The notes under the pieces: model-generated | Told to the model about the DNA's origin: nothing | What the model saw: only the letters and a program-made list of their open reading frames with translations | The model's database searches: none | Origin: Orbicella franksi | Taxonomy: Eukaryota | Direction: 5' to 3' | Length of the DNA: 64,000 bases | NCBI GenBank assembly: GCA_964199315.1 | Contig: OZ116705.1 | Location: forward strand, 6,014,001-6,078,000 | Shown: positions 781-23,369 of the stretch, piece after piece | Layout of the letters: each line of letters begins with the position of its first letter | How positions within the stretch are numbered: the stretch's first letter is position 1 | Program-made: the position numbers and the translations under genes

Positions 781-1160
781 GATCTGTTTAGTACAGAAAC
801 GCAAAATCCGTTTTCGGATTTAAGAATCCAATGTTGGATTTTCTTAAAGAAACGCACCCTTAGATGTGTAATAAAGGTTCATCCTAGCAGAGTGCAAGTG
901 TTTTAGAAGTCCCACTGTGCAACTTGCGTCCCAGCATGTGTGATTTTGTACCATGTGACCGAATCGTTCAAAGGGCCTATTCAATCAGTGAAGTTCTCAA
1001 GCCATAAATCATGAAATTTAGACCTCTTTCGCCCTAGTAAGGTAAAGTCTGCATATTTGAAATAACTCTTACATTTTGCGTCTGCAATTACATTCTGAGG
1101 CGAAATGATGTGTAGACATCATGATTCCCTACGAAGAGCATCGACAAAGAAATATTTCGC

Positions 1161-1441
1161 CTACTGTTGCATAGTTATAAGGTATTCAGGGTAGCACTGA
1201 TTCTCGCAAAATACAACAAAAATAGACGGGTTTCCTTGATTATTGACCACTGATTCATACAAAATCTCTGGTCTCCATGTGTACTTTGGGGGAGGCACCA
1301 TCATTGAAGAATTGCCTACACAATACTGCCCGACCAGGACCCGGGCAAGGTACATGTGGCGGACCCCGACTCCTCCCCTTGCGTAATTAAGTGAGCATCG
1401 AGCGTCTCTTGCAAAATACACACCGCGTCCATACTTAGTTC
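1161..1441 (-). CDS. PARP14: Copy A last exon, ART catalytic C-terminal half
   Basis: GTKYGRGVYFARDA...PSIFVVF...QCYPEYLI; acceptor tttgcag; TAG stop at 1161-1163. Confidence 0.9.
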
Positions 1442-4400
1442 CTGCAAAGGAACACAAAGTGTGAGTCAAAGGATGGATTCCAGCAAATAACAGCATTAAA
1501 AAATGAATAAAAACAACTATGAAAAAAAGGGCGGGTATTTCTGTGATTCACTACCTTGAAATCATGGCTAAAGAACAAAGGAAAAAAAAAAGAAAACGAG
1601 GGAGAGAAGTTAGAGGTCCCCATACTTGAACTCTTCTGATGAAATTTATTTGAAACCTATTGTCAGTTCTGTCTCAGATTTCCCGCCTAAGTATCTTGAG
1701 GTCGACATCTAATAGATAATTTAGACAGAGGGTATCTTCTTTTCTTTAAGGGAGACAGCGTAGGATTGAATAATCCGGTAAAGAATTATAAATATATTTC
1801 AAATGGTTATTCAGGGGCACAAGGATTCTTTCCTTGTTTTCTCTCTTTCTCTCTTTCACTTGGGCATCATGGATTGCACAATGGCGAGAGCGCTCGCCTT
1901 CCACCAATGTGTTCGTTGTTTTGGCAACGGTGGTCATTGTTGTTTTTTTCTCGTGATTGCTCTGGGCATTTTCCTCCGGCTTGTTGGCTTTCCTCCCTCG
2001 TTCCAAATTGTAATGCGCTCTCCATGCACGAGCCCCTCAATTGTTCGCGGGTAAAAAGGGTTATAACATTTTCTTTACATTTTTCCCTTGATGGCCTTTT
2101 GTCTCTAAATACGGTCTAAATTTGTCGCTAAAAACTTGCTCCATCATAAACGTTACTTTCACTACTCATCCCCTCCCCTACCAGAGCAATAATTTAATAA
2201 AACCACTTGCCATAGGCCCCACAGAAGCTTCTGTTAAATCCTCGAGCGTTGATATGGCAGACATTTTTAGCGTCGGTTCCATGAAACAACTGCCGTTCAC
2301 TATTCCTACCAATGTCTTTTTCCATCTTCTGTTTTCTTAACATGTAACACTGGTACAGATAAGGATTCTGTATTCTCTCTATTTTGTGAATAATCACTCC
2401 CTCAACGGTAGCTTGGAACCTGAACAGGACAGCTTGGTACTCAGAGGAACTTGGTGCGAGTTCTACGGTGTGCACTGTCATGTTAGCGCTTGGCAATGGA
2501 TCCCAGTATTCGGGAAGAGGAATTCCTAAAGACAGAAATAAAATGTTTGCTAACTTAACCTTTAGTCTAGATGGAAACAGATACAAAATCATCAATTGTA
2601 GTTTCAACTATTATCATATGGCTGAGAAAATACCTCATTGTGATTGGCTGAGAACAGGCCAATTTAAATAAGTAATTTTTAATTTGCTCTGCGGTGCAAA
2701 TTAACACTTGCGCTTTCGTAATTTTCTCAATCACAAAATAAATGACTAATCGTATGAAAACTCGCACAGTTAAGGATTTATATGCGCTACTAGCGATGTT
2801 TGAAAATTCTTTCACATTAAAGGCTCGTGAAGTTTTGAGAGAATTTCCAAATATCACTAGTTTTATAAATTCCTGATTGCACTGGCATTCCCACGATTGC
2901 CTATACTAAGCGTTAAGAAAATCATAGAAAGAGGATGAAAAGCTAGATTTCATCATGTCACGAACATGCCTTCATATCTTCATTCCCACCCCCCGGTTCA
3001 AATATATGATCTTTCATATATTCACTTGTATTCTTCACCTTCTACGGGTATATTACGAACTCACGTTGCGATCAGCTCCCAGTTGGCTTGATAGCTCCGT
3101 TGGTAGAGCATTGCGCTGGTATCGCAGAGGTCATGGGCTCGAATCCCGTTCAATCCTGAATTTTTTTTCAGGCTTTTATTTCAGAACTACGTAAGCTGTG
3201 CTTATAACTGCGATGATCAATCAAGTCTTCATACTGTATAAAAATTGGTAAAGGGTCTCGGAAAAGCTTTGGATCTGTATAATGTAAGCTAATACTCTTT
3301 AGCATGACTTATCTTTTTAAGGATGTTTTATAATTACGGCGCGCAAGAAAGTTCTGAAAAAACGAAAACGACTCTTACTTCTAACAGTTAGGCAACTAAT
3401 AAGCAATAAGGCCACAAGGTCATTCAGGACAGTGCTCAGTGTAATACCTGAAAAATATTACCCCAGCAACAGAGCAATCTGATTGGTTGATTTTAGTTAC
3501 TGGCCCTCTGAACTAACTAAGGGTGTGTTTCTTTAAGAAAATCCAAGATTGGATTCTTAAATCCGAAAACGGATTTTGTGTTTCTTTTCTAAACAGACTA
3601 ATCCAAGATCTCTCGGATCGTGGTGCACCAAAGGAACCGAAGAGTCCTTGCCCAGAGTGGATTCTTCGGTTCCTTTGATGCACCACGATCCGAGTGATCT
3701 TGGATTAATCTGTTTAGTAACGAAACGCAAAATCCGTTTTCGGATCAAAGAATCCAATCTTGGATTTTCTTAAAGAAACGCACCCTTAGTTATGCAACAA
3801 AGGTTCATATTAGCAGTGCACAAGTGTGTTTTTCACATCTGTGTAATATCTTCTGTCATTTTAAACAACGTCATTTCCAGTAATAAACTGTCACTAACCT
3901 TCTTTAGCTCCCTTCACCTTCCTCTTCAGTGTAATTTGTTCACCGGTTTGTTGTCCTCGGCCAGTTTTTGCTTTTAAATCGATAACAAACTGCTCTCCAC
4001 GTAAAGATACTTGTACTCTGGGCTCATCTTTACCGCACGCCATCTCAATCTTGGCGTTAGTTTTCCGACAGAAAGCCATTTTACTACCATGTATTTCATA
4101 ACTCCATTCTATGTTCATTGCCACCAGCAGCGCCTGTTCTTCCTTCTGGTTCTTCCTTGTTCTCTCGCTAATCTCTTTCCAGATCTCCCCGACCATGCCG
4201 GACACATCAGTCGGTTGACCCCGTACGACAATGCGATCAAGACCAGCCTCGACCACAAGTTTGACGTCACGGTCCTCGGCTTTTCTTCTCAGGCTGACAA
4301 TCTGTTTATGAGAAAGTTGACTAATGGCCTCACTTTCGACTTTCTCAGTGGTAAAAGCTTCAAAGTAACCTTTCTTCAAAGACTCCACAGCTTTTTCCAC

Positions 4401-7400
4401 TCCAGCCTTTTTCTTGCCGATCACACAAATTCGCACAGTGTGGTGTAGACTTGCTTGTTTTATTGGACTTCTTAAGCGCATTCTTGGCTGGCCAAAATCT
4501 GTGTCATCCGAAGACGAGTCGCTTTCTTCTTCGTCCAAATCTTGCATTGAGCTTCTCTGCTGTTCTTGCAAAAATTCCTGGATCATTCGAGCTTGAAATA
4601 CAACCACTCTCACTTTGCAAACACTTTTACAACTGCCGTTGAAGTTGTTGAGCGCTTGAAATATTACCTGAGCCGAGTCCGCCGCGGCCAAGCCATATCC
4701 GCCGGTACCAACACTTGGAATTGAGATCGATCGAAGGTTGTGTACATCTGCAACACGAAGACCCTCCTCCAAACATTGCTGAAGATGTTGTTTATCTGAA
4801 GAGCCCGGAATTATGTGAATGATGTGAGATACTTGTAAATTCCCGCCACTGGTCATCACAGCTGAGCCCGCGGACTGCTTTCCCAGCTGGCTACACTCTT
4901 GCTGCACCTGTTGACCGCTGGCTCTTGCTATTGCTTTGCTCAAGTCACCGGCGTTATTCATGTTCATATCTGTGCTGTTGATATTCATGATGGCGTCGGT
5001 CTTCTCTTGCGTAAGATCACCATTTATGACTTCCACACTAAAGCGGCGATCCTTACCAATGGGTGACGTCGTGCCTTTACTAGAATATGAGGAGTGCCTA
5101 TGGTGCTCCTGCTGAAATGACTGCAGCATTTGAGGTTGGAAGACCACAATCCTAACCATACGAATGGTGTTAAAGCTTCCGCTAAAGTTGCCAAGAGCTT
5201 GAAATATCAGGTTGGCCGAGTCCACAAAAGACAAACCCAATGCTCCAGTTCCAACTGCTGGGATAGAAATGGATTGAAGACCTTTCGTTTCTGCAAGACG
5301 AAGGCATCTTTCCACGCACTGCTGCAGATGATCCTTTCTCGCAGAGTCTGGGATCAAGTGAATGATGTAACGTGCCGGCAAATTCCCACCTCTAGTAATC
5401 ACCGCTGATCCACCCAACTGCTGTCCCAACTGATTGCACTCAGCCTCCACTTGAGAACCACCTGCTAGCTTCACTGCCTTGCTCAAGGAACCTGCAGACT
5501 CCATATTCATATCTTTGCTGGTTGTAGTTACAGTGGCGTCTGTTGTCTCCTGGCACAAGTCACCCGGGACAACCTCGATACGCACACGCCCCGGTGAGAG
5601 TGGCACCCTTCGTCGGAACTTAGAACGAATACTGCTGAGCAGCCCTCTCATAGTGTAGGCAGGACCGAATTTGTGCTTAGCTCTCAATTTGTCCACTTCT
5701 TGTTTGAAGGCAGCTGTTAATGTCTGATCTTGCTGGAACACGAGAAATCGAATATCCCGCACTTTAGACACAGGGTTGGCTTGGCAAAAGCTGATCGTTT
5801 CTTCCAACATGATTCTTGAGGCTACGTCCCGCGGGAAGCCGAGTTTTCCAGTGCCTATGACAGGGAATGCGATTGACCTCGCTCTAAGCTCTTCCGCCTT
5901 TTGTAGACACTTTTGGACAAGGGCCCGTAGAGTCTGAAACAAAAGGAAAAAATAAAGAGAGAAAAAGAGTGGACTTCAAAGGTGGACCATATAATAAGTA
6001 CTGCACCAATCCACTAATGCCTTTATAACTTTCCTCAGACTAATTCTAAAGAATCATACGAAAAGGGAGTCACAGCTGGGAGAAACACTAAGCTAGTTTT
6101 CATCTTGAAGTTTTGTAAAGTTGAATTGACCACCAAAATCAGTTTGTGAAGATAAAGCCTTATCGTTAGCCCTTCGTCGGAGCAAAGCGGGAGACTGTGG
6201 GTTGTATTTGGAGTGGTGGGTTTTGCGAAAGAAGGAAAAGCGGAGAACTTCGAGAAAACTCTCGGAGCAAGGACGAACCAGAAAACTTAACCCAGATGTT
6301 GCCGGGCCGGAATTTCTACACGAGCCACATTGCATGGTGGGAGCCTAGCTTTCTCCCAAATAACTATGCCACCACTGCTTTTCAACCATTATGAGGCAGC
6401 AGTTCAAGGTACGAAAACAAATGCACTTACCGCCTCCCCTTCACCACCATTCCATTGGCAACAGGAAGTGTTGACCACGTGATTGGCCAAGGGAAAACCA
6501 GGAGAGACAGCAATGTCTCCAAGGTTTGGAGTGTTCATTACAGGAACACCAGCATTGATAATCGCTCGACACGATGCTCCCACTGAACTGACCAATACAT
6601 CAGCCTGCAATTCAAATTAAAACTTCAGGTTAAAATATTGTAAAGCATTACAGAGAGGATAGCAAAACAAAAAGCCCAACAGAAGTGCCCCCTTTTCAAT
6701 GTATAGTTAATCTGAAGTTTAAGTTGCTTAATCACACTTTGAACAGATGGTTTCTGGAGAGTGTTTGAGAAACACGTGAAGAAAGATATTGTCCTAATTA
6801 AGTTGGATTTTAAGGGGAAAATGAGCGAAGCAATTGTTAAAATTATCAAAGTAGGAGACTTAAATGGAATTAAAAAGAGTTATCTGTAAATTGAGTTAAA
6901 CAGTGTGATAGCAGAACAAAGTTATAACAGACAGCTTAGAAATTATGGGTTTTCTTGGATGCATTTAAATCTGATTGATAGTTTGAAATGACCGTTTTAT
7001 AACTGAGAACTAATCAAAAGTGACACACTGATAAGTGGACAAGTATCGGGAAGTGGGTACGCAGGTTTAATCGCTCAACACTCACCTTCTCTGTCTCAAT
7101 ATTTGCAGCTCTCAAAGATATTCTGTGGTGACCTTTGGTCGTAACCAAGGTAGATGCATCAGACCTACTAAAAGCAGCCCCGTCGTAGTCGTCTTCGTCG
7201 TCTTCATCATCATCATCGTCATCATCATCATCATCATCATCAACACTGAAGTCATCACGCCTCTGGCCAAAATGCTTCTGTACGTGTATGGCACAGTTGT
7301 AAACCTTTTCCACTGATTTCACAAGACGATCTCCTTTTCTGCTTTCAAAGTACTTCTGGAGGCCTGGCTGTTTCACCTGAAAGGTTTTGGAGGCGGTGTC

Positions 7401-10400
7401 ATTTATAAGAGCGTCAAGCTTCCTTCTCAAACGAATCAAACCTTCTTTGTTTCCAGAAATGTAAAATTCGTTTTCGCCTTTTCCTTTGTTAATCTTCACT
7501 TCAAAATCCTTCAATTCATTTTCAATGGAGCGCAATTCTTCCTGACGACGCTCGGTAAGATACCTTATGACAATCTGAGATGAACATACAAACAATTCTT
7601 CCCTGATGCAGTCGCTCTCCAAGAATGTATTAAGCTTCTTCATCACCTCTATGACGTCATCCCGGAACCCAGCCACGTGGGTGTCATTCCAGTTGTTCCT
7701 ATGGATACGGACAGATGTTTCAGTGTTGATTTCGTCACACAACGAGAGCCACTCTGGTGATTTTACCAAGCATTTGCTCTTATCATCCACTTTTTCTTCC
7801 AACATCAGCTTGTTCAGGAGCCTCGTGGCATTGTCTGCATGCGCAGCTGACGTGCCCACGATCTTGGCATCTTTGCCAATGACGAACACTGCCTCCACGT
7901 TATTCTTTTCCAACTCACTCTTCACTTTCTTTAACCCTTCATCTGAGCCTAAAACTTCTAAGATGCCGTCGGACAAAGTCAAAGTGTTTTCAACCATGTC
8001 CGACATTTGTTTTTTGAACTTCATAGTTGCTTCAGTAAACTGTAGCCAAGGACCTTCAAAATAGATTTCTTCGCCTTCAGTGTCTAACTTTATCTCCAGC
8101 TCCTTGTTGTTCTCTTGAAGTTTCTCCACAAACTTGATCTTCTTCAACAGAATCAAGCGTTCTTCAGGAACGCCTGGTACGTTCTTCTTCAGGTATGTTT
8201 TTCTGGTTTCCTCCCGGTATATCTCTTCCAATTTAGATTTCAACTTCTCCTCGTAATCTTTAACATCTGAGCTCAGAGAAACAATTCTGGCAGCAAATAA
8301 ATTATCGATAGTTTTGACCAGCGGAGGATCCACTCCCAAGCAGGCGCGAATACTGGATAACTGTGTTTTCACTGCTCTCCAGAAATCCTTGTTGACTTGA
8401 ACGTCGCGCTTTGCAAATTTGCCGAGGTAATTTTGTACTTCATCAATGCACTCGGAGTGCCACGAATCACTTTCGTCTCCTCCTTGGTACACTATTACAG
8501 CCATTTTGTTGTTCGGTTTCCAGGTAATTTCACACTTCTTTGCTGCAAGGGAATTGCTTAGTTCATCACGAAATGCTGAAGTGGTGACGAATTCCATTAC
8601 ATCCGGGTCTACAGCTACAGCAACAGTTCCCAGTCCACTTGAATCGTCTGGCACGTCGCCTGCCTCGCTTTCTAGAAATTCATGGTAAATTCTAATTGAC
8701 AGTTGCGCTTGATCTAAGACATGTGGTTCTTCTTCATGCCTGGCTAAAACACTTTCCATATCTGTGAACCAAAAATAAAAGAACTATATACCCGAGCAAC
8801 AGTGCCTAAAACATTTTCTCTGCAACAACGAATGGAAATTAAACCAGGTCTGGAAAGAAAAGTCTAGCAGTGGCTACATTATAGTTTAATAATGTTCTTT
8901 AAGGACGTTCGCGCGAAAATTTTCCAACATTGATTTTGTTTTCTCAGACTTTTACCACTGTAAGATGATGAGTTAGTTATGTCTGAAATGTAAAAAATGA
9001 GGAGTCACCGACTTCGTTTTGGAGAGAACATGCCCGAAAGAACACCCAAAATATGAAAAAACGGGCTTCGCTAGCAAATAAGGCCACAGTGTCTGTAAGC
9101 CCAAATATATTGATATTAGATCTTTGAGGTTCTCTACCAAATATTGTTTAAGGGGACCTATTAAGTGAATTTAGTCAACTGGTAAGGTTCCTTAAAGAAC
9201 AAGTTCACATTTAGCGGCCAGAGTTTCACACGCCTTGCAGCCGCAAGATGGCAGGATTCGATGTCCTGTGGACAGAAATCTTGAAACGTTTTTTCCAACT
9301 TCCCACATTGATTTTTTGTTCACTTTTGGACAATGTGGAGATAATTGTAAATAAAATCTGTTCCTGGAAAGAAAAGTAGGGGTCACCGAACGTCCAAGAT
9401 CGTTAAATCCAGGCAAAGCTATAGCAATGGTCATCTGCCATATCATTGTTCATTTTATTACTTAGCGCGCGCTCATGACGTGGCGTGTGAATTTGCGTGC
9501 GCAGTAAGGATGCGTAAAAAATTAGCGCGAACGTCCTTAAATCAGAGTGATTTTAAAGTAGTTTAATTTTCCTCAAAGGGGAAGGAGAGTCGGGGACAAA
9601 TAACTTATTAGACTGGAAAATATGAGGAAATTTACAACAATTGCTTGTATAGCCTAGAGGAGGTTAAGGTGGACTACAAAGTCAGAGATTGGGTGTTCGA
9701 GTCTAGGTGAGTACAGAACAAAAAAAGTGGCTATGAGCCACTCAACTTGCAAAATGGATCGTCTGTATACAGTGACAATTTTGATGCCACTGACTTGAGG
9801 TTTATGCCAGTAAGTTAAGTTAAAGTTAAAGCCCACTGGCAAAACGCAACGGTAAGAGAATACACGAGGATATGTAACACCAACAAAAACATTCGTGAAG
9901 TTACTGGTGATCCTTGTCCGGGTCAGTTATAAAGAAAGTAAGGCTTCCTGTCCGATCAGCAAAGCAAGTATAATCGGATTCTCATTTTCATTCCTATTTT
10001 TTTCGTTCTTTATTTTCCCAGGCGATATCGGTGATTTTTTTCTTTCTATGTTACTTTTTGAGAGAAAAAAAAAAATATTCAACGCAGAGTCACACTACCA
10101 CAAAGACAGCACCGCGTCTCGCCCGCTTAAAAAAGTTAAGCCCTGTTCGGCGGGGTCCATGCTTGGATGGGTTACCAAATACGAATACCCCGTGATGTAA
10201 TAACTTCTCCTTTTTTTTCTTCCCTTTCCAAGGCGATATTAGTGACTGCTGAACTCCCAGTCTTGGGAAATGTCTTTTATTCTATTGGCAAGAACAATAT
10301 CTCAATATCTCAATATCTCTTGGTGGCAAGAACAATATCTCCCTAGTTCGCTGCGCTCACTCGTGAGATATTGTTCTTGCCACTCGAACATAAAATTCAC

Positions 10401-13400
10401 ATCTTCTCGCCACCGTGTAATATCCAGCGTCATATGATAAACTTTTTGACCAATCAGAATGTCCAGTTCTTATATTCACCTCTAGAAGTTATACTAAAAA
10501 AAAAAGAAGATTTACCTCAACAAAAAAGCTTTCAAGTTGCATAGAATGATAAATCTGCAATCATTGTACTTTACTTTCTTTCCACTTCTATTCTATAAGC
10601 CCATTATACTTGGCTTTAATTTCAATGCCTGGTGTATTAGGTACATAGCCCATGCAACAATCACGTATCTCTTTGCAATCATGGCACCCCCCCCCCCCCC
10701 CAGCTACAACACCCCCAGCCGCCTCTTTTGAGGCATTTTACCTTTTAAAAGCATAAAAAACTTTAAAGCTTAATTTCTACAAAAAAGCTCGCAAATACCT
10801 AAAAAAAGAATATCTTCACTGCGTTTGAACCAGATGATCTCAATTTTCAAGGTTGATAAAGAACATTTTTCTCTAGGTTATTAACTTGAGAAGATCACGG
10901 TACTTACCTTGATCTTCTCTTGATGTTAAAAATCAAACTTACCCAATGTATTAAATCCTTCCCCAATTATTTTGTTAATATTTGGTAAGATATATATGTT
11001 ATCTGCCGGCTGCGAGGTCCGTAGAGTGAAAAATTGTGACCGAGGTCTTGAAAATGCTGCCCTCGGCCTGCGGCCTCGGGCAGCATTTTCAAGCCCGAAG
11101 TCACAGTCTTTCACCATATGGACCGACTCTAAGCCGGCAAATAACATGTTTATTTTTTTTCCTGCAGTAAATTGGTTTTACAGATTACAAATGGGTTTGT
11201 TTACGCATTTACGCTTTGTCCTTGAATCGGCTTACGCACCGTCTACTGACGATTTGCAAAAATCTTCGCAACGAGCGGGTAACTCAGATAGTAGACAAAG
11301 AAAGATGTATAAAAAAACAGATATTTTTCGAACTACTTTATGTTGGTTGCATTTATTTCACCACTTAAGGGACTGTGCAATAATTACCTGGAGAGGGGGT
11401 TGGAAAATTAGAGGGGGGGGGGGGGTTGGATGTAAAATGTAATACATACAGAGGGGGCATTACTTTTTCATTCCTGGAAAAGTAGTGGAAGAGTTATTAG
11501 AGTTCAAATATATATATACTATCATCGGAATAAAACTGACAAATTTATCAACTCTAAGGTGTTCTGATCTGTTGTTTTCCTATCTGAAGAAAGGTCTTTG
11601 CAAGAGGTATGTTCCCAGAACAACGTGGACGAGACTGCATGTAAAAGTTATGTACAGCACCTTGAGTTCCTCGATGCAAAAGTTAAAAAAAAAGAGTCAG
11701 AGAAAGGAACACTCTCCCGCTTATTTCTTGGACAATTAAAAACGATGTAGAAGCGCTTACCAACAAGCAGCTGAAAATGTATCTAACGCTAAAAGGTCTT
11801 AAGATAAGTGGAAGCAAGGCTGAGTTGATTGATCGAGTTCTCACCCACGCACGCGGGAACCTTAGTGCTAGAGATGCTGTAGAAGATGAGGAATCTCCCA
11901 GTTCACGCGAACACGACACAAGCTCAGAGTCCAGTGATTCTGATGACTCTTCAAATGACTCTGACATACGTCGAAGAGTCATTTGAAGTGATGTTTGTAC
12001 CTGAGGAAGATCTCCAACAAGTAAACTAGGTATGAGGGAATCAATGGGAGGAGATTTTTTTCAAGGGGGGCGGGAAGGTTAGCTTTAATATTATTATGTG
12101 AGGGGGGGGGGTTGAAATTAATTTTTGCTTAATGAGAGGGGGGGTAGACTTAGTTTTGGGGCATATTTCACCCATTTCCCAACACCTCCCCTTCCAGGTA
12201 ATTATTGCGCAGTCCCTAAGTTCTCCAAAATTGGTTTTGCGATATGAAATTTCGTGCGAAGTTTGAAGTTTTACTACAAAAACAATTTCTGTCAGTCGTT
12301 GCTATCAAAATCACTTGAAATTAGACTTTTCTACCGTAAATTGTCTAACAGAAAACGAGTAAATTCGTTTAGTGTATTCCACAGAAATTCTCCTAAATAC
12401 AGCAACAATCAGACAGGTAAACTCGACTGAGATTGACTCACATTTTACGGCGAGAGAAACACAAGATTACGCGCCATTAAGCTACAAACAACCGAGCAAA
12501 CTCTCACAACTTCAAAACACTCAATTGAATTTACTTACAGTGACTTTCCTCGCCATTTTAAGGTGAACAGAGATAAACTTGCGTTGACTAATCGTCGATG
12601 GTAGTGTAAAAAAAGCAAAAGATTGACGATTACCGCCAACTTTTAGGAGCGAAATTTAGGAGCCCTAATCACTACAGCGGGGAAAAAATCCGGCCCGTGG
12701 GCCGTATCGTAAAAAGCTGGACCGGTCACGAGTGCACAATTAGCCAATCAAATTCGAGGACTTAGGATTCCGGCCTGGTCAGATGTTTGAGAAAAAAATA
12801 AACACACATTAACCAATGAACAAACAAGAACTGACTATACGTCATGACGTCGTGCGCGATCAACAACACAACTCGCAGAGCAAATATCTGCCAAGTTCAA
12901 GTGCTATAAAACTCTTATTCATTTAGTTTTTGTTCTCGCATATACAGTGTACTTAAGGATATGAATTTTGTGGAAGGAATTGAATATGGTCTATCCAACT
13001 TAAATTCAAGTCTTTGAAGGCTAAGGAGGACAGGTGAAAGCAGTGGATGGCTATTTATCCGACTACTGTGTGATGCGGATCGTTTGGGAAATTACGTTTG
13101 GACCTCCAGGAAGAAGAACAGAGCCGTTCCCGCAGTTTGTGTAATTGTTGCACTTTTAGTTGATTTAATGAATGACCAATTCAAGTTTCTTCTCTACAAA
13201 GAAAGGGCATCCCAGCAAATTTGCCTCGGTCGTTTTACCGTGTTGAATGCAGTCGTCGATCGATGAAGTACTTTTGGGAACAGCGCTTTACTTCTCTGCC
13301 GTTCGTTGCGACTTCGGTTATCAAAAAAAGATTTACAGAATTAAAGTTCCCCCAACTAATTCCGCCTTCTTTAGTTAATTCGGATTCTCTTCGGTAAAAG

Positions 13401-14093
13401 CTACATCTAAATAAGTTTATAGCATTTGTCAGGCAGCTCTCTGGTTGAGCGCTGGTTAATCTAGACTAAAATAATTCTCGATCGGGTTAAGGTGGCTTAC
13501 TTCAGTTTTGATGGATTACAACAGCCCAACTTCTAACTCTTTTGAAAAATGTTCCAAGATGTAGACTGGGCACTAGTAGGTTAAATCACGTTTTAGGGAC
13601 ATAAGTTATGAAATTCCATGTTTCTCAAGCCATACATAAGTAAGATTATTGTTCCTTTCATGAACGCCCTTTTTAAAAGTTAGGAGGTTGTTATTCATTA
13701 ACTAGTGTGGCATGTGCGTGACCTGAAAAGGCCTAAATTTAAAGTCAGGTTGTGAAGTCCATTCACACGGTACATCAACAACAAAAAACATTTTTTTAGT
13801 GGAAGACCCATCAACAAAAAATCGCTAATCATAGCTGTTAGTGATAATTGCGTTACAAACCTTTTGGATCTTCAAACACAACCACAGCCATACCACTTTT
13901 TGGAATAAATTGTACTCTCTCCACAGGTCCCCACCTCTTCTTCGACTTTCAAAGTACAGTTCAATGGCATCACGCGTGGTAGTATCCGAAATACCACTGA
14001 CAACAATGCTCTTACAGGCAGGCACTTGTTCAATGGAAAACTTTGCTGAATCCAAGCCTCTTTCTTCGCCTTTGGTCTTGATTCTACTGAAAT
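1161..14093 (-). CDS. PARP14: PARP14-like gene copy A (exons 13861-14093, 7086-8761, 6431-6604, 3899-5933, 2211-2525, 1161-1441); 5'-truncated, frameshift in first visible exon
   Basis: Six exons with compatible phases (1-1,1-0,0-0,0-1,1-1,1-stop) encode RRM/NID, KH-like, three macrodomains, WWE and an ART domain. Confidence 0.85.
2211..2525 (-). CDS. PARP14: Copy A ART N-terminal exon
   Basis: GIPLPEYW...IERIQNPYLYQCY...RQLFHGT...GFNRSFCGAY; 315 nt as in copies B and C; donor is GCAAGT. Confidence 0.9.
3050..3235 (+). mobile_element. tRNA-derived SINE-like repeat
   Basis: A-box-like gatagctccgttggtagagc and B-box-like gggctcgaatccc followed by a non-tRNA tail; decayed relative at about 47255-47345. 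Confidence 0.7.
3521..3785. mobile_element. Palindromic MITE (fold-back, about 265 bp)
   Basis: gggtgtgtttctttaagaaaatccaagattggattc ... gaatccaatcttggattttcttaaagaaacgcaccc; a right half recurs at 782-860. Confidence 0.85.
3899..5933 (-). CDS. PARP14: Copy A exon: end of macro 1, macro 2, macro 3, KH-like, WWE
   Basis: Three SI(A/S)(F/I)PxxGTG motifs; VVPGDL and VINGDL macro starts; WWE-like IEWSY...FVIDLK; 2035 nt, phase 0-1. Confidence 0.9.
6190..6390 (-). mobile_element. Decayed tRNA-derived SINE (relatives at about 1870-1930, 21215-21340, 30460-30545, 32630-32830, 58790-58895, 60955-61160)
   Basis: Recurring gagagc(g/a)ctcgcct(c/t)ccaccaatgtggccc...gggttgagttt motif. Confidence 0.65.
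6431..6604 (-). CDS. PARP14: Copy A macro 1 core exon
   Basis: ADVLVSSVG...NHVVNTSCCQWNGGEGEA; ttgcag acceptor, GTAAGT donor, 174 nt, phase 0-0. Confidence 0.85.
7086..8761 (-). CDS. PARP14: Copy A large exon: RRM end, KH-like repeats, acidic linker, macro 1 start
   Basis: Open 581-aa ORF, clearly paralogous to 33587-35586 and 62026-63977; ttcacag acceptor, GTGAGT donor. Confidence 0.9.
8903..9536. mobile_element. Non-autonomous DNA transposon with TTAA TSD (Kolobok-like)
   Basis: TTAA|GGACGTTCGCGC ... GCGCGAACGTCC|TTAA. Confidence 0.8.
10085..10270 (+). mobile_element. 5S rRNA-derived SINE-like repeat
   Basis: ctaccac...caccgcgtctcgcccgc...aagttaagc...gcttggatgggttacc...gaataccccgtgatgta follows the 5S layout, then a non-5S tail. 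Confidence 0.65.
10990..11155. repeat. Imperfect palindromic repeat element
   Basis: tgtgaccgaggtcttgaaaatgctgccc...gggcagcattttcaagcccgaagtcaca; source of spurious ORFs on both strands. Confidence 0.75.
11369..12216 (+). mobile_element. PIF/Harbinger-like non-autonomous element carrying a SAP-domain fragment
   Basis: TAA|GGGACTGTGCAATAATTACCTGGA ... TCCAGGTAATTATTGCGCAGTCCC|TAA; internal LTNKQLKMYLTLKGLKISGSKAELIDRV. Confidence 0.75.
13861..14093 (-). pseudogene. PARP14: Copy A RRM/NID exon with 1-nt deletion
   Basis: DFSRIK...SIVVSGISD...AIELYFES; 233 nt versus 234 nt in copy B; G5 run reduced to G4 near 13930 shifts the frame. Confidence 0.8.
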
Positions 14094-14877
14094 CTAAGCG
14101 ATAAACCAACAGTTATCAGAATGAAAACACATGGAAATTTATGTCGCCTTCTTATATAAAAACATAGCTAATTTACAGTACAACTACAATTGTAAGAAGA
14201 AAATACAAACAAACTTCAGAAACTCATTAAATTTTGCTCGTTTTTGAAATATTCTCATGCACAAAACTTCCATTGAACAATGTTTGCTTGCAACGGACAT
14301 TGAAGTTGAACCGACTTAACAAAAATTTTCCCTGTAGAAAACACCCTTTATTTAAAGGTTAGGGGTTACACGAGTATGACCAGAGAAATAGGCAAAGCTG
14401 TTTCTCTAGACAAAATGGATAGTAACAGAGGACAACTGCAAAATTTTGCTTGTCGAAGACAAGAAACTATTGCATGTACTTAAAGTTAAGTAACATGTTC
14501 TTCAAAACTTACGTCCATCAAAACGTAAATGAAACCAAACATGCATCAACAGATCCTAATTTAGGGCTTCAGGAATAACTGGGTAAACAAACAGAGCCAA
14601 AGAAGAAGTTTCTGTTACCTTGATTCTCACCCATGCTAACGCACAGCAAATCGTCACATTACTACGAATACGGCTACAGTTACACAACAAGTGTTGTGAA
14701 GTTTCTTAATGATACAAAGAACCATAAAAAATCTAAACTCTGTTGTAGTCATATTTAGAGAGACTTTTCATTCATGAAGAACTAATGAGCAATAAAAAAT
14801 CGGTAGATTTTACCACTTCTGGTCATGTACTAAGTAACGAGTTAAAACATAAACAACAGGGTCAGTGTTCTAGCGAT

Positions 14878-14903
14878 TCAATTATTTGCATTAGGAAGCA
14901 AAC
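14878..14903 (-). CDS. Candidate terminal exon of the GT4-TRADD-N gene (GLLPNANN*)
   Basis: Strong acceptor (ttttccttttggccttctccgagatctattcttag); phase-1 reading reaches TGA; minus-strand AATAAA near 14350. Confidence 0.35.
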
Positions 14904-16344
14904 CTAAGAATAGATCTCGGAGAAGGCCAAAAGGAAAATATAATCTAGTAGCACGCTGAAGATGAACGTCTTGTGTTGTTCCAGGTATTATTTTACATAA
15001 ACAAAGCCATCTTTGAATAGAAGACAGGAATTATCGATTGTTTATCAATTTTTGCCAATCGATAAAGAGATTTTTCTGTGAGTTATCGATTGTTATCGAT
15101 TGCTGATATCAATCGATAGCAATAAGCGATTGATATCGATTGATTTCCAATGTCGATTTTTATCGATTGACTATGCCTGGCGATCTTGAACGCATGACAA
15201 ATGGCAAGCGAACAATTTTTAGCCGTGTGAACAAATACCCATTGGTGTGCTTTTTGGCGTGAGAGGTCAAAATTGTATTTTTACAAAGAGGTAAAATTTA
15301 AGATTTACAGTTGTCGAATTGAATGTCTATTCAAGAATAAATAACGTGACCGCGTCAACATGACGTGACCGGTCAACATGACTGGCGAGTGAAGTTTTTG
15401 GCCGGTCAAGTCACCATTCTGGCCGGACATTGTCCGTTCACCGGCCATTATTTTGCGCCCTGCTGCTTGTTATTGGTGGATTCAGAGACTTGCAAGTTAT
15501 TTGGAACATTAAAGAATTTGATAAAAGGGGTTAATTTACAGGGCACTTGCATCTTAAACTAATCTTAGATTCATTTGCACTGGTTCATCACAAATACATT
15601 GTACTATAAATACTATAATATGAAGCAATAATATCAGCACCCATTGTTTGAGAAAAAAATTGTACAAGAGCACATGATACATTAATTTTTAGGCGGAAAT
15701 GGGTTAAGAAACACATTTTATTTCTAAGATTGCTTATTACATGTAGCTTAAGGAATGTGTTTTTTTGCAGTTGAGCAGAATTTTTGACACTCGCTAAAGT
15801 GGTGTTCTTTTATTCATTTCCTTTTAGATAACATCTATCTTGTACTGTACAGGGTAGGTCTCTACTTGCATTCAGTACTGCATAACAAAGGAATCTCAAG
15901 TATGAGCCCGGGGGAGGGGAGTACTCTACAAAATGACAGATTTCCCCACCCTCTCATATATCTCAACTTGTGAATTCCCTACCCCTTGATATACCTGAAG
16001 CCTGAAAAACAATTACCCCTTTTGGGCAGAGCCTCCCCCTATACAGTAGGCCTTTGTAGGGAGTACCCCCCACCCCACTGGAGTATGAGCAGCTAATTAT
16101 CTATTATGACAACTCAAGGCTGTGGTCTGAGAAAAACTATGAGGAGCCCAAAGGTTCCTAGCCATGAAATCCTGGGTGCCCAGTTCTTAAGCTAATATGA
16201 ATTTAAAAGTAACTTTTTCCATTCCCCCAAGGGCAAAAGTTAGTCACCTGTGGCATTTGGGCACTTCTAGAGCACAGCCCTGGAACTTGTGGGAAAAAAA
16301 AAAACTTTTTTTAAACTGGTTTTTACACATATACATGCACATAC

Positions 16345-16500
16345 CTTCATTATCTGATACTGAGTCATCTTTATCATCTGTTTCACCTGTTTTGGTCAGA
16401 TCATCATCATTATCATCATCATCATCATCATCATCATCAACATCATCATCATCAACATCATCATCATCTTCAACAGGTTTAGCTACACTTTCACATGGAT
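16345..16500 (-). CDS. Asp-rich exon
   Basis: Acceptor ctttatttttaaag, reads [20 protein letters not shown]...DSVSDNE, donor GAAG|GTATGT; 156 nt, phase 1-1. Confidence 0.65.
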
Positions 16501-19152
16501 CTTTAAAAATAAAGACAGACTGTTTAGTTCTCTATGAAGTAATCAATGTACATGAATACACATGTACTCTGACTTACAGAAGAATCTTTGTTTACAATAT
16601 TTGCGTCATTAGCAAAAGCGATTCAGTTTCTGATGGAGCTACAAAACCATTGGTTCTGAATATTGAAAGAGCATAGCATGATTACCTGTGCCAAGGAATT
16701 GGAGACTGATGCATTGAATACCTTTTGTGCGGCACAGGTTTAAAAACTCAAAATTTTACAAATGTATGAGCTCATTAGTGCTATTGCCACCCAGAAATTT
16801 AACAGTTTTTGAAAGCCAATTTCTCCTTGAATATTACATCCAAAGAGCCAAAACTTTCACCAATTACTGAGTTTCACAAACTCTTTAAATGCTTGTAGTC
16901 AATTCATGTCTAGTGTGATGCAAAGTCATATGTTAATGAGAAAAAAATGTAAGCAATGACGTCAGCAAAGATTTGCTTATTTAACAAAGTTCTGCATTTG
17001 TTATGCTACATGTACATGTCCATGTAACATGTGGTATTTTGAGATATAATGCCTATTATTGTTGCTTTATTTGAACCAAGAAACTAGGCACATGTAGAAT
17101 ATGAAGTTTGTTTTTCCCTCTTAACCGATTTTTTTTTTTATCTTAATGGTCGGAGGAGCCTGAGTCTTCTCCTGACATTGTGCATTCCTGAGTAATTTAA
17201 CTAAAACATTTTTAAAACTATTTACCTTCTGCTGGATCTTTCTCAAAGTACATCTTGCATGCCATATACTCCTCCTCTGAGATTGTTGTTTGTAGATTCA
17301 ACTCTGCAAGGCTCAGTTTTTTCAAGATCTCTTCTGTAACAAAACATCTTTGAACAACTTCACCAAGATGACCAGATGAATAATCTTCCCACAATATCTC
17401 CAGGATCTCAAGTGAATCACACTTCATGGTTATCAGCAAACTTCCTAACTTAACACCTGTGATAACAACTCGCATTTCTTTCAGGTACGTCAAAAACTCA
17501 TCACGATCAGCCTTGCAACTTGGAGGTGTAGTCTGCATGTAGTTTGAAGCAAGTAAACGTAAGACCTCTTCTTCTGTAGGAATGGGACTTATTGGTGCTT
17601 GGGGAGCTTCAGCACCTGTACATGAAGGCTGGGTAGGGCCTGATGACACAGGTGCCACAGATGCCTCCTGGTGCCCACCATTTTGAGACCCTCCCAATTC
17701 TACTGTTGAAAAATCCTGTGTGTTGTGTTCTGTAGGTGTCATGGTTTCCACATCAATCCTTAATTTCAAAGCTGTCAAATTGGAACAAATTTTCAAATAT
17801 TTACTAGTATTCTGTATTTAGTTTTAAACTTTTACAACATGTACATGTATTGTTATACTATTTACATGTCCATGTACATGTGCTATGTAGTTAATGCTTC
17901 TTCCCACTTGTAAGTCAAACTTCTCTTTAGATGAAGTGCAATGAAATCATCTGTCACAATGTTTTTGAAAGTGGAATGCAACATTGCAAGCTTTGGGAAT
18001 TCCTAGTAAAGGTTTTAGGCACATTCCTGGGTATGGATGGATGGATGGATGGATGGATGGATGGATGGATGGACGGACGGACGGATATACCATGCCACAA
18101 ATTTTAACAAGCGCTACAGAAACCACACAGCATCCTTTTGACACCAAAGCAAAAGAAACGAAACTGAACTGTCTAAACACATTTGGTTACTCAAAGATAA
18201 CAACAAACCTTTTACCATCAAGTGGAGAATCATTAAGAAGTGCAGACCTTATAACAACATTAGCAACAAATGTAATTTATGTAGTTTTGAGAAGTTTGCA
18301 ATCATCTGTAAGAAGAATTTGTGAAGCCTAAACAGGTGAAACGAATTAGCAAGTTCATGCCCCCACAGAAACAGATACCTACTCAAGAACTTTGTGATCA
18401 AGTATTGCAATCTTTTTGTTACACATTATTTGTTTTACACTCCATAGCAACTCTCGCATCTGTTTTTGCATCTCATAGCAACCTTAGCTTTTAATTGCCA
18501 GTTCTTGTAATTTAACGGTCATTCATTGATATTGCCTGATGAGTGTGGTCATTCTTTATCAGTTTGTCCATACAAAAGAGCATTGTCGCAATAAAACGAT
18601 GAATTGAAAACTTGCTACCATTGACCATTATGTATATAACTTTATATCATTTCATATTTCAAATTTTACTATTACAATTTTATTTACTAAAATGTCCATT
18701 TTATTTAATGCTCATTTATATTTTGTTATTGTTGTCGTGCAATTTATACATGAGCCCCTAGCTCAGATACTGAGGGCAACCTCTTCTAAAGCATGACATT
18801 AATAAATTGATTGATTGACTGATTGATTGGTTAGTTGGTTGGTTGGTTGGTTGGTTGGTTGATTGATTGATTGATTGATTGAGTGAGTGAATGAGTGAGT
18901 GATACAACAAGGAGTCTACTGTACTTGTCAGGTGTCAAGAGAATTGAGCAAATAATGCATGATCAATGATATTTTTTTGGCCCTATATCCCACCAGGGAG
19001 CCAGATAAAATTGAATCATCTGGACAAAAGATTCTCCCAGCTGGCAATTCCTCAAATGAAGGGAACCAGTGATGAGGACTGGTGAAAATTTTTGTTAAAT
19101 TCTCTATGAACTACATGAGTGTGTCAATGGGGTATAGCTCTAGTCAGTAAAC

Positions 19153-19186
<34 letters not shown>

Positions 19187-22100
19187 ATTTAGTCAGTAAA
19201 CTGTTTAAAAAAAAATGGATTTAGTCAGTAAACAGTGAAAAAGGAGATTTGTCAGTTAACTTGTACGATTTTATTACTTTTATGGGCTGTAGATGACCTC
19301 CACTTGTAAAATAAGTCATGACTGAAACAAAATCAGTTTTTCAATTAATGAAAATATGACATGATTTTTTTCACAGTATTGCACAATTAGTATTCTGCTG
19401 TGGACTCCTACATCCGCACACGATTTTCAAGACTACAGTATTATGACCATTAATTTCATAGCCAGACAATCACACTGAACACTAACAATAATTTCTGTAA
19501 TAATGCGTTCCTGAGTGTGGTCCAAGTGTGGCCGACCTCGCGAAGCAACACAATTTGGGCTCAAAGCAATTTATTCCAAACTCCCTAGCTTTCTCTTTCG
19601 CACTCTCTACTTGTATGTTTCATTTTTGAAGTTATTGAGGCTGCTTAAGTCACCTTGAAAAGAAATTCTTGAGCAAAATCATTTGAAAACTTTGCGGAAC
19701 TTTGGTAAAAAGTAATTACAGTAAAACCTGTATTAAGCAGACACCTCATTAGTGTGTGCTTAATAAAGGGTGTCCACTTTAAACAGGTTCTGATATATTG
19801 TCCAATAATAGCTCATTATTATTACCCTTTTGAAATCATCACGTTTATTGACAACTGCATGTCACCTCATATCAATTGATAATTTAACGGTGGCTGAACA
19901 CAGTTTTCACGTGCGCTTTCGCTGATGCAATTCAGGGCGCACACAAAGATTGCGAAAAACAAGCATGCTGTCAATAGAGTGATCATTTTATTTACTGAAC
20001 ACCCGCAATATCTGTGCTATTTTTCTCTATAATTAAACGCAGTGTATTGATGGCTTTAGTCTTTTATTACAAAGATATGTTAGAAGAGGTAATGATGCAA
20101 AGAACCCAGCAATTCTCAGCTTTTTCTTTGTTACCAAAAGAACCCAGTTAAATGCAGCGCATGCATAGTAAGTCAAAAAATTGCGATTGAATGAAAAATT
20201 GCACTCTCGGAAATACGCCTATTCCTTGAGAACCACTCATTAGAATTTCACGAAATTTGGCACGAAAATACTTTAGGAAATAAGCAACTAGAGTATTGAA
20301 AATAATTGAACTTTAACAAAGGAAATTCTAGATATTCCAGTGAACCTTCAACAACGGATAATTAAAGATCTCTCTGTTAAATTATTAGCAAAATGGTGTT
20401 AACTTGTGAGAATTGTTACAAGCTTCTTGCATGCAAATTATAAAGCAAATCTAATGACTAGATTTTCGACAAATAAACAAAACTGATTTTAAAGGCCTGT
20501 TTATATTTATTCATTTTGCCATGGCAATGGCACATATGTCAACTTAACCATCAAAAAACCAAAGTTTGTGTTGTTAACTTGCTTGTTGCCATTTTTGGCG
20601 AATGAAGGATCAAGGGTTTTAGAGGAAATGGTGAATGAAACACAGGTATCAAAAACTGTGTTCAGCCACCTTAACCCGGATTTTCCCTCTACACTGTCTT
20701 CTTTTTTCCTCGCCTATTGAACTAACAAAAGGCCCCTGCCTGATTGCAGGGTATTGAAAATTTGCAATCAGTATTTTCTAACTGTAAGTACTAAGTCCAT
20801 AAAAATGCAGTATAGTGTACAGAAATTCGTAAAACTGGGGCCATAAAGAGGACAGAGTATATGGACCAAAGACTGCTCATAAAACAATGTCCAGTCAGTC
20901 AATGCATCAGTCTAGAATATTCAGAGCAACTTCAGAATACCCAGCCACTTTATTTACATGTGCCGGTGTGCTTTGAAGAATGAGGTATATAACAATAGTT
21001 GCTATTCTTATTCAATGAGATGCTAATAAGTGGCTGGGTATTCTGGAGTTAAGCTGAATATTCTCCTAATAAATAGCTTTAAAACAACATCACTGAACAA
21101 TGTTAAAGGAGTCTGAGACCACTATTAAAGATAAACAGCCCTTGAAGTGTCCACTTAATACAGGCTTTGTGCAACAAAATGGCTTAATATTGGTGTCCGT
21201 GTTCACGTCTGGAGAACCCGGAAGAAAACCCTTGGAGCAAGGGAAGAACAAACAAGAAACTCAACCCATATGACACCGGGCCTGAAATGAACAGGGCCAC
21301 ATTGGTGGGAGGCGAGTGCACTCACTAATGCGCCAACCCAATGGATTATCCATATGGCTTTGTTTTTATTTTTTATGTTTACTTTTTACTTCATTCCTAT
21401 TTATTTATGTTGTAACTGGCCATTAAATTTTGAGTAAATAAATAAATAAATAAATATTGAATAAATAAATATTGAAAAATATGATAAAAACTCCTGCCAT
21501 GGTGTGGAATTTTCAAAACCTTGACTTAAAGGTTCATCAAACCTTGAGCATGTGGCTGTTATGCGAAAAACCTTAGAAAGCCAGACATTTTACACTGCTG
21601 TGATTAACATGTTGCTGTGTAGCTACATGTACATGTACCTACAAAAAGCAATGGTAGAACGATCATGACTAAAACACCACACGAGTACATACGAGTAACA
21701 TACGAGTAAATATAAGTAACATACGAGAACATACGACTACATATGAGTAACATACGAGTACATACAGACACATATGGTAATAAACAGGTTATATACGAAT
21801 ACATTGGAGCAACATAAGATAGCAGGAGGGTAGTAAACATGAAATGTACCATTTTTATCTTTATATTTCATTTTTACATGTGCACGGGGTATGTTTTACG
21901 CACACACACGAGGGTGCGCAAGTGTTACACATGTGTGCATACCACACATATGGGCCTGTGCCACATACATACATTCTCCAAGGCTTAGCATGTTACTTGT
22001 ATGCACTCCTATGTACTCGTATGTACTTGTATATACTCGTATGTACTCTTATATACTCATATGTTACTTGTATGTACTTGTGTGGTATTTTAGTCATGAT

Positions 22101-23369
22101 CATGGTGGAACTGGGAGGCTTTAAGTAAGTAAACATACCATTTAAGCTTTCTACTAAACCCTGGATCATCCTGTTGAATCTCTGACATTCATTGCTCCAG
22201 GGGTAAGTTTTACTGTAGTTGTCTCTGAGTAGCTTGGCATTGTTTTCTCTCTCTTCTGGACTTTGCCTGGACAGTTGTTGGATCCTTTGAGCCCACTCTT
22301 CAGGGTCATCTGATTCAATGATGACAGACTTTCCACCTTCTACTTCAAGTAAAGCTTCAGCTATTCCAGTTTCACCAGCAACAAGAACAGGAATACTAGC
22401 AGAAATTGCTTCCAGGGCAACCAACCCAAACCCTTCAGTGCGTGAAGGGAGGACAATGATGTCTGATGCATAGTACATCATCTTAAGTTCATCTTGCTCA
22501 GTGCAATAACCACGGACTGTTATTTGGTTAAGGCTTATGCTTGTGTTGTCAAGAAACCATTGTCTTATTTTTGTGTGTTCACCAGGAGATGAGCCAACAA
22601 ATGTCAGCTCAAACATTTTGCCAAGGGATCCTATGGCATCTGCAACAATGTCATAACCTTTGAGGGTAAGATCTTCAAAGCTAGCCCGTCCAAACATAAA
22701 GACATTGAACTTCTTCTTTACCACATGTAATCTGTCTTTGACCAGCTGTGATGACTCATTTGAAAACTTTTCAAAAATCCCAGGAGTGATGATCTCCACC
22801 TTAACATGTGGAAGACAATTGCTGTATTTCTGTTGTAGCCGTGATCCAACTGCGACAACAACATCAGCTACTTTGCACAGATCAATTTCACGTTTATGTT
22901 TCTTCTCATTCTCTTCGATTGTATCCACTGCAGCACTCTGCGTTGCTTTGAACTTTCCAAGGTCTTCACAGAACACATGGACAAAATGTATCCACTTGCA
23001 CTTTGCACTTTGGACGATACAATAGGCAGGGGTACCAAACTTTCTTCCGTGGCCTACAACAATGTCCAGATTCGGAAGTTCCGGTGGTGGAATTTTCAAC
23101 GAATCAAGAGGAACAACGGATCCAGGGATACTCCGAGCAGTGATCAAGTTAACTCCATGTTGCCTGGCATCTTCTCTGCTCAGTTCATCGCTTTGAGAGA
23201 CGTAGCAGTGAACTTTGATGCTGTCGCTTGTAGTTTTTGCCAAATTTACAGCAAATTCTCTGTTGAAAGTGGACAGACCACCTTTAGAAGACTTCCACTC
23301 GTCGCAGAGAAACATGACATTATAAATAGTTGGCCTACTTGCTGCACTCGAAGTTTGTCCGCTTGCCAT
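16345..23369 (-). CDS. GT4 (GT-B, MshA-like) glycosyltransferase - TRADD-N-like - acidic protein (exons 22139-23369, 17226-17771, 16345-16500; 3' end uncertain)
   Basis: ATG at 23369; three exons with GT..AG boundaries, each ending in phase 1 and joining in frame. Additional small exons between 17772 and 22138 are not excluded. Confidence 0.75.
17226..17771 (-). CDS. TRADD-N-like domain exon
   Basis: [54 protein letters not shown] matches the invertebrate TRADD-N-like pattern; 546 nt, phase 1-1. Confidence 0.75.
18033..18085. repeat. (GGAT)n/(GGAC)n microsatellite
   Basis: Direct reading. Confidence 0.9.
18101..18597 (+). mobile_element. Penelope-like retroelement 3' remnant (GIY-YIG endonuclease C-terminus plus terminal region)
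   Basis: [49 protein letters not shown]...[12 protein letters not shown]...[15 protein letters not shown] with three in-frame TGA stops. Confidence 0.8.
18530..18593 (+). ncRNA. Degenerate type I hammerhead ribozyme motif
   Basis: Stem I tattgc/gcaata, core CTGATGA, stem II gtgtgg/ccatac, GTC cleavage triplet; the GAAA core reads AAAA. Confidence 0.55.
18808..18902. repeat. Compound tetranucleotide microsatellite (GATT/GGTT/GAGT)
   Basis: Direct reading. Confidence 0.85.
21661..22101. mobile_element. Inverted-repeat element with internal degenerate tacgagta(a)ca arrays
   Basis: gatcatgactaaaacaccacacgagtacatacgagtaacat / atgttacttgtatgtacttgtgtggtattttagtcatgatc. Confidence 0.7.
22139..23369 (-). 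CDS. GT4 glycosyltransferase domain exon
   Basis: [17 protein letters not shown]-terminal loop, [18 protein letters not shown], and [14 protein letters not shown] (intact E-x7-E); donor AATG|GTATGT. Confidence 0.9.

Follow-up and report, generated by a model that had tools for sequence, protein, structure and literature searches.

A GT4 glycosyltransferase-TRADD-N module spliced onto a PARP14-type body in the coral Orbicella franksi, a probable product of intronic exon shuffling

Proteins in which a TRADD-N domain is fused to a PARP14-like body occur in oysters, a sponge and corals, according to the available part of the survey of Kaur, Iyer, Burroughs and Aravind (eLife 2021, PMC8195603), in which the coral form reads HEPN+TRADDN-DEDD2+RRM+KH+Macro+Macro+PARP. 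The Stylophora protein PFX17023.1 (HEPN+TRADDN-DEDD2+RRM+KH+KH+KH+Macro+Macro+PARP) and, likewise, RMX48053.1 from Pocillopora are examples of this form. The same source describes, in cnidarians, cephalochordates and hemichordates, proteins made of a GT4 domain and TRADD-N followed by leucine-rich repeats (LRRs), and its supplement catalogues a form with ankyrin repeats as well as GT4-TRADD-N proteins devoid of any further domain; more than 500 GT4 paralogs are reported for Acropora digitifera. The present work concerns a gene that brings these two lines together in Orbicella franksi, in a stretch of 64,000 nucleotides (GenBank assembly GCA_964199315.1, contig OZ116705.1, positions 6,014,001 to 6,078,000, forward strand), hereafter the window. 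Between positions 23369 and 1161 of the minus strand, the exons of a GT4-TRADD-N gene precede a PARP14 paralog (copy A, 2-14228 by self-BLAST). It is likely, in our judgment, that all of them form one gene, in which GT4, TRADD-N and acidic exons were joined to the PARP14 paralog by intronic recombination and are transcribed and spliced as a fusion.

The gene model was built by reading splice sites and frames directly on the sequence, and comprises nine minus-strand exons. Exon 1 (22139-23369) carries the start codon and the GT4-conflict domain (amino acids 1-410) and ends in phase 1 at the donor G|GTATGT, exon 2 (17226-17771), in phase 1 at both ends, encodes a linker and the TRADD-like N domain (amino acids 411-592), and exon 3 (16345-16500) an acidic poly-Asp linker (amino acids 593-644) with a (GAT)n run at 16396-16477. 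The body begins with exon 4 (13861-14093), a PARP14-type RRM whose frame is broken in the assembly at a run of four G (13932-13929). Exon 5 (7086-8761) is an open frame (amino acids 723-1281) that covers the KH-like region and a second acidic run and then enters macro domain 1; exon 6 (6431-6604; acceptor AG|GCT, donor G|GTAAGT, phase 0) covers the middle of macro 1 and is also open in the orthologous contig L007 described below; and exon 7 (3899-5933; amino acids 1340-2017) completes macro 1 and carries macro 2 and macro 3 together with the WWE domain. The ADP-ribosyltransferase (ART) domain is divided between exon 8 (2211-2525), with the N-terminal half, the triad His (LFHGT) and a GC-type donor G|GCAAGT, and exon 9 (1161-1441), with the C-terminal half, the Tyr (GVYFA), the Ile (PSIFVVF) and the stop codon.

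The nine exons sum to 6647 nt. When the single break in exon 4 is read as X, they give a frame of 2215 amino acids with no further stop, in the order GT4, TRADD-N, acidic, RRM, KH-like, three macro, WWE and H-Y-I ART; this is the length that a first-pass annotation of the locus had proposed for a repaired RRM exon. The donors at 22139, 17226 and 16345, which that annotation placed in phase 1, indeed have GT and phase 1, and the acceptors at 14093 and 8761 have AG and phase 1. All fusion junctions being in phase 1, splicing yields the single 2215-residue frame. In the assembled haplotype the frame shifts in exon 4 and a stop follows after 727 amino acids, five codons into exon 5. A splice from 16345 directly to 8761, also proposed earlier, would skip exon 4 and does leave an open frame (2137 amino acids), but in the RNA contigs the RRM exon is retained. 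Behind the first ART exon (2205-2215), the frame can be kept only with a GC-AG donor, G|GCAAGT, no GT donor being suitable; a read-through motif, CGA(Y/H)GKW, is conserved at this donor in copy A and in the two other PARP14 copies of the window, B (near 30700) and C (near 59030).

With respect to domain content, the open reading frame at 23378-21993 (minus strand) is a GT4-conflict domain (PF20706, E 2.2e-78), a family of the GT-B fold, that scores 264 bits against a cut-off of 26 and covers positions 2-384 of the 385 in the profile; the EX7E motif of its C-terminal Rossmann half is kept and aligns to NESFGLVAMEA of MshA (3c4q). The open reading frame at 17796-17218 is a TRADD-like_N domain (PF20694, E 7.7e-12), and exon 2 taken by itself gives E 7.3e-12 and 45.4 bits (cut-off 23.7), with TRADD-like_N as nearest Atlas cluster (0.99) and all the nearest clusters of this same kind. 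On the 3' side of these frames, on the same strand, follow RRM_PARP14_3, three Macro stretches, WWE and PARP. Exons 4-9 thus carry RRM, KH-like (below threshold), macro, WWE and PARP domains in PARP14-type order: matches to PF23085 (RRM) flank the break of exon 4 on both sides; exon 5 matches KH_PARP14_1/2 (PF23084/PF23248) weakly, below threshold (E 0.009 and 0.048); exon 7 matches the macro profile PF01661 in three stretches (E 4e-50) and WWE (PF02825, E 0.0019); exon 8 matches PARP (PF00644, E 6.8e-07); and exon 9 matches the catalytic domains of PARP12/15/14 with E values from 4e-22 to 3e-20. The ART triad is H-Y-I (LFHGT, GVYFA, PSIFVVF) and not H-Y-E, PSIFVVF being aligned to PSIFVIF of PARP12 (2pqf). 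In the Pfam scan no exon matched NACHT or NB-ARC.

Four RNA runs were compared with positions 12000-17999. Two of them, X11 (polyA) and X10 (cDNA), are Logan contig sets from the window's own species group and come from two independent studies, whereas X21 and X23 are raw-read runs of a diverged organism and represent paralogs for the most part. The junction 16345|14093 between exons 3 and 4, for which the first-pass annotation had suggested a search of RNA reads, is present in contigs of both X11 (depth 53.8) and X10 (depth 36.2); the 2251 nt left out between the two exons are bounded by GT..AG on the minus strand. On the exon 3 side these contigs agree with the window over 51 nt, as far as the masked (GAT)n run, and position 16372 has the T of the window where the paralog expressed in X21 has G. 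The X11 contig, 738 nt long, consists of 85 nt of exon 3, the whole of exon 4 and 425 nt that depart from the genomic (intron) sequence past the exon 4 donor. The junction 17226|16500 between exons 2 and 3 is found in X10 at a depth of 30.9, and contigs without a single difference cover exon 2 (17226-17772) at depths of 24-59. The depth of the 16345|14093 junction being close to that of exon 2, the fusion splice appears to be the main form rather than a rare read-through. Moreover, the polyA runs contain a share of 0.24-0.28 of the sampled words of 13800-23400, a value that agrees with the presence of exons 1-4 (0.23) but not with that of exons 2-4 alone (0.10).

Other features of the RNA data concern related loci and the introns. 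In X21, 184 raw RNA reads that are 90-95% like the TRADD-N and acidic exons run past the 16345 donor into other sequence, and the consensus of these loose ends has no match in the window or in the loci compared; judged from these reads, a highly expressed X21 paralog seems to join the TRADD-N-acidic module to a different downstream exon. RNA depths of hundreds to thousands occur at 12200-12800, 13400-13600, 15200-15600, 16000-16200 and 16600-17000, within introns 2-4, where many mismatching contigs and loose ends resemble expressed multi-copy repeats or transposons. An imperfect palindrome rich in ATCGAT lies at 15085-15167.

The break in exon 4 deserves particular attention. Copy A possesses four G at 13932-13929 where copy B has five, and both junction contigs (X10 and X11) have an additional base behind 13928, so that the frame of the RRM is maintained. 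The run index was queried with 13899-13958, where every 31-mer, three of them being sampled, spans the 4-G site. All 4-G words (share 1.00) are contained in seven DNA-type runs (X25, X26, X31-34 and X16) and in four Illumina RNA runs from two studies (X27, X28, X29 and X30), of which X29 and X30 belong to the study of X11. None (0.00) is contained in X17 and X18 despite the presence of 0.7 of the surrounding 9.6 kb, a share of 0.00 meaning that the exact 4-G haplotype is absent and not, by itself, that the 5-G form is there. Occurring in several DNA and RNA runs and absent from others, which have some other sequence at this site, the 4-G form is a real, transcribed and non-fixed form and not an assembly slip. 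The interpretation favoured here is that the frameshift of exon 4 is a segregating allele, and the window haplotype has the shorter one, hence a product of only 727 amino acids. The frameshift noticed in the first-pass annotation is thus real in the window, but the in-frame RNA contigs indicate that it is not fixed.

The PARP14 body downstream of the junction does not look like a decaying pseudogene: exons 5-9 are stop-free, the H/Y/I triad is retained, and non-synonymous changes are depleted relative to the ortholog. The latter, L007, is a 7.1-kb contig of another coral metagenome assembly, 95.9% identical to 9892-3865 with introns included; it ends 1.1 kb upstream of exon 5 and cannot show the junction. 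Exons 5-7 are open both in the window and in L007, exon 5 being 98.6% identical. The ratio of non-synonymous to synonymous substitution rates (dN/dS) is 0.44 for exons 5 and 6 together (10 synonymous and 17 non-synonymous changes); exon 7 gives 0.49. The divergence between the two is uneven, exon 7 (3899-5633 against L007:4150-6005) differing by 8.1% and the flanking introns and exon 5 by 0.6-2%, with a rise that starts near 5633; gene conversion between paralogs, a chimeric metagenome contig or a fast evolution of macro 2/3 are candidate causes.

Paralogs still indicate where the two parts of the gene met. Homology to the GT4-TRADD-N-acidic paralogs L004 and L005 spans the exons from GT4 to the acidic one and ends at 15928, and homology to PARP14 paralogs, represented by copy B, starts at 14228. 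These two limits place the join within 1.7 kb, in the present intron 3 (breakpoint interval 14228-15928, minus strand). Inverted repeats were sought in intron 3 as a sign of a transposon at the breakpoint, but nothing clear emerged. The point where the nucleotide homology of copies A and B stops, given as 14228 versus 36548 in the first-pass annotation, is 14228/36549 by BLAST, about 135 bp upstream of the acceptor of the RRM exon. Self-BLAST likewise confirms the absence from copy A of any counterpart of the N-terminal exon of copy B (open reading frame 39733-37658), also remarked upon at that stage; instead, the GT4-conflict, TRADD-like-N and poly-Asp exons sit upstream of copy A on the same minus strand. 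The proposal that exon shuffling joined a GT4 module to PARP14 is largely sustained by homology limits that bracket a breakpoint in intron 3 and by a junction observed in RNA.

Among the loci compared, the PARP14 paralogs L002 and L009 have upstream exons of the ordinary kind. In L009 a three-macro body (3853-5281, 88% identical to copy A) stands behind a first exon of the copy B type (9894-11992), itself 70% identical to 38792-37493 of the window; to judge from these sequences, this arrangement is probably the ancestral state of copy A before the GT4 module joined it. The upstream side of L003 is syntenic, with the 3' end of a B-like PARP14 followed by GT4 and TRADD-N, and L010 shows neither GT4 nor TRADD-N within 10 kb upstream. 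Exon 2 shares 82% nucleotide identity with the TRADD-N exons of L003 and L004. With its TRADD-N exon closest to GT4-TRADD-N paralogs, the TRADD-N-PARP14 join of this locus is seemingly a separate event.

Other explanations of the locus have to be considered together with these data. Two genes would be present if a stand-alone GT4-TRADD-N-acidic protein of 652 amino acids were made through an alternative terminal exon (14878-14903, minus strand) with a poly(A) site near 14350, next to a decapitated and decaying PARP14 pseudogene. The acceptor at 14903 is indeed phase-compatible and leads to a stop after 8 codons, an AATAAA is found near 14350, this assembly has a frameshift in the RRM exon, and GT4-TRADD-N proteins of comparably simple architecture are catalogued in the available supplement of PMC8195603. 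Yet no 16345|14903 joint is listed in the X11 and X10 contig sets, where 16345 is joined to 14093 instead, and the depth over the proposed poly(A) region (14200-14399) is 0 in X11 and 0.64 in X10. The X11 depth is 0-4.5 across 14200-14999, and the contigs placed there have 7-8 differences and resemble repeat copies. Stop-free exons 5-9 in copy A, with preserved catalytic residues and a dN/dS of about 0.45, further disagree with a pseudogene, and this alternative, already raised by the first-pass annotation, is regarded as very improbable. A conjoined transcript, i.e., an occasional read-through of a GT4 gene spliced onto a neighbouring PARP14 that is normally separate, is a further alternative: tandem, same-strand and phase-compatible genes often yield minor chimeric transcripts, and the evidence for the fusion comes from RNA. 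Copy A, however, lacks both a first exon and a promoter of its own, its homology to copy B ending 135 bp upstream of the RRM exon; X11 and X10 display no other joint or coverage upstream of 14093; and the junction is as deep as the upstream exon, with no separate GT4 3' end seen. We therefore hold this artefact to be improbable too.

Somewhat more weight, within the domain of the unlikely, is given to a near-identical second locus as the source of the spliced in-frame contigs, the window locus then being fixed for the frameshift and producing a truncated protein or nothing. It is in keeping with the large paralog families to which both the GT4 and the PARP14 exons belong, and with exon 4 of the junction contigs, which differs from the window by 4 and 9 substitutions per approximately 230 nt (1.7% in X10, 4% in X11), plus the extra base, while the exon 2 contigs of the same runs are identical to it. 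Against it, the sole X11 contig over the RRM site is of the 5-G type when X29 and X30, from the same study, have 4-G words, a pattern that points to alleles among colonies rather than to a pair of fixed loci; at base 16372, which discriminates between paralogs, the exon 3 portion of the contigs agrees with the window; and uneven divergence at a single locus is also seen against L007 (8% in exon 7, 1-2% in its flanks). Gene conversion from copy B was considered as a source of the exon 4 differences and rejected, only 2 of the 11 variant bases being equal to copy B. Besides these exon 4 differences, several observations weigh against a single spliced gene. Neither a read nor a contig reaches all the way from exon 1 to exon 9, the Logan contigs breaking off in the (GAT)n run of exon 3, and the junctions 22139|17771 and 13861|8761 are not directly seen in the RNA contigs. 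An exact-match scan of JGI metagenome contigs with the spliced exon 3|4 and exon 4|5 junctions returned 0 matches, and the raw-read runs X21 and X23, the reads of which are only 90-95% alike, give no direct count. The closest GT4-TRADD-N loci of the other coral assembly, L003/L006 and L004/L005, are devoid of PARP14 exons in the approximately 12 kb downstream, and the uninterrupted frame is not encountered at the window haplotype itself.

On balance, a single fusion gene accounts best for these data, and the following scenario may be proposed. Intronic recombination would have set the first three exons of a GT4-TRADD-N-acidic gene before the RRM exon of a PARP14 paralog, and the transcripts would probably unite exons 1 to 9 on one molecule. 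The allele with the longer G run would be fully open, and the shorter allele would leave GT4, TRADD-N, the acidic linker and half of the RRM, from a transcript that is a likely target of nonsense-mediated decay. By analogy with described proteins of the TRADD-N class and with PARP14, the product is predicted to be a cytosolic anti-invader protein, in which the RRM and KH-like parts would bind RNA and TRADD-N would dock or oligomerise the protein with death-fold or TRAF-type partners, or couple it to itself. The H-Y-I ART may mono-ADP-ribosylate targets, the macro and WWE domains reading or removing the mark, and the GT4 head may be a second effector, a retaining sugar transferase acting on an invader or a host molecule. 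A bolder conjecture, to which we attach little probability, is that GT4 and ART act as a pair on one substrate and that the frameshift allele is a natural switch under balancing selection. The GT4 head could, for example, attach a sugar either to the ADP-ribose mark or to an RNA or protein modified by the ART, under proofreading by the macro domains, and colonies would carry either the full two-enzyme effector or the GT4-TRADD-N part alone.

The locus offers a traceable case of exon shuffling in the construction of a predicted immune protein: the breakpoint falls within 1.7 kb of one intron, both donor gene types persist as paralogs, and the RNA is spliced as predicted. It places a glycosyltransferase and a mono-ADP-ribosyltransferase, with readers or erasers of its own, in one predicted chain, and the truncating allele, common to several samples, provides a natural experiment in which the full protein can be set against the GT4-TRADD-N part alone in studies of coral disease or viral resistance.

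The window contains three PARP14-like copies, all on the minus strand (self-BLAST), copy B extending from 27898 to 36549, with the additional upstream reading frame already mentioned, and copy C from 55854 to the window end. The first exon of copy B (37658-39733, minus strand) is open over 692 codons and has no Pfam match; it includes about ten 33-nt repeats at 38792-39637 that encode Pro-rich, PPPHAQPTLAP-like units, as well as what may be a small helical domain, a stretch rich in RGG and an end that resembles an RRM (LLVSGLSALTTEDCLVNFIE...). Compared with the macro exon of copy A (3887-5620), copies B (31405-32082) and C (59735-60412) are without about 1.1 kb, the stretch 4502-5620 of copy A having no counterpart in them, and their macro reading frames retain just part of one macro domain together with WWE. 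This short macro form also occurs in L002 and L003 of the other assembly, and thus represents an older subfamily.

Among known proteins, the nearest cluster representative found by an exhaustive HMMER search with the GT4 exon is P0007, a GT4+TRADD-N+LRR protein with 78% identity in the GT4 part and the same GT4|ALK(L/V)RIDVET exon junction; the relatives P0026 and P0054 carry NACHT, and the GT4 reading frame of P0151 is 100% identical. Nine long proteins were scanned from the best 150 HMMER matches: in none of them does GT4 share a chain with Macro or PARP, and all nine combine GT4 with LRR, Ank, NACHT or Death domains or possess a doubled GT4. Homolog searches with the GT4, KH and macro exons returned mostly single-exon reading frames from genomic coral contigs and neither a spliced product nor a gene model of sufficient length, targets of 2215 amino acids lying outside the search length. 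In the available part of the PMC8195603 supplement, 0 of 149 GT4-GTase+TRADDN-DEDD2 rows are directly followed by RRM, KH or Macro, and the GT4 source data, to the same extent, hold no eukaryotic architecture with Macro or PARP; no report of a GT4-PARP14 fusion was found in the literature searched. The GT4 plus PARP14 combination is accordingly absent from the available part of this 2021 catalogue, which covers TRADD-N and GT4 architectures, and, from the sequences compared, the fusion appears to be known to date from the window's species group alone. The first-pass annotation had called the architecture unfamiliar, which holds for the apparently unlisted combination and not for its elements, effector-TRADD-N-PARP and GT4-TRADD-N being both present in the available part of PMC8195603.

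The closest described counterparts are the coral HEPN-TRADD-N-PARP14-like proteins, which share with the window gene an enzyme head, TRADD-N, an RRM-KH-Macro-PARP body, a size of about 2000-2200 amino acids and an origin in stony corals. Their head is a HEPN RNase, whereas that of the window gene is a GT4 glycosyltransferase, and the body of the latter comprises a single RRM, three macro domains and WWE. The GT4-TRADD-N proteins continued by LRR or ankyrin repeats possess the same N-terminal module and exon junction, but the C-terminal partner of the window gene is a complete PARP14-type body instead of LRR, Ank, NACHT or Death domains. With the GT4-headed NOD-like receptors of Acropora (GT4+NACHT+LRR), it shares the head alone, NACHT being absent. 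The DED-TRADD-N-RRM-KH-Macro-PARP proteins of oysters and the sponge Amphimedon, as described in the available part of PMC8195603, similarly have TRADD-N on the N-terminal side of a PARP14-like body, but they occur in other phyla, their TRADD-N is of the NCOA6 clade, and they have a Death-fold partner and no enzyme head. Vertebrate PARP14 (ARTD8), a macro-PARP mono-ADP-ribosyltransferase, likewise combines an RRM and a KH-like region with three macro domains, a WWE domain and, at the C-terminus, an ART the triad of which lacks Glu; the window gene differs in its third triad residue, an Ile as in PARP12 in the 2pqf alignment, in its one RRM and in the replacement of the usual first exon by GT4-TRADD-N, the likeness being one of domains. 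Judged by its predicted domains, the window gene thus appears as a new combination inside a described class and not as a new class.

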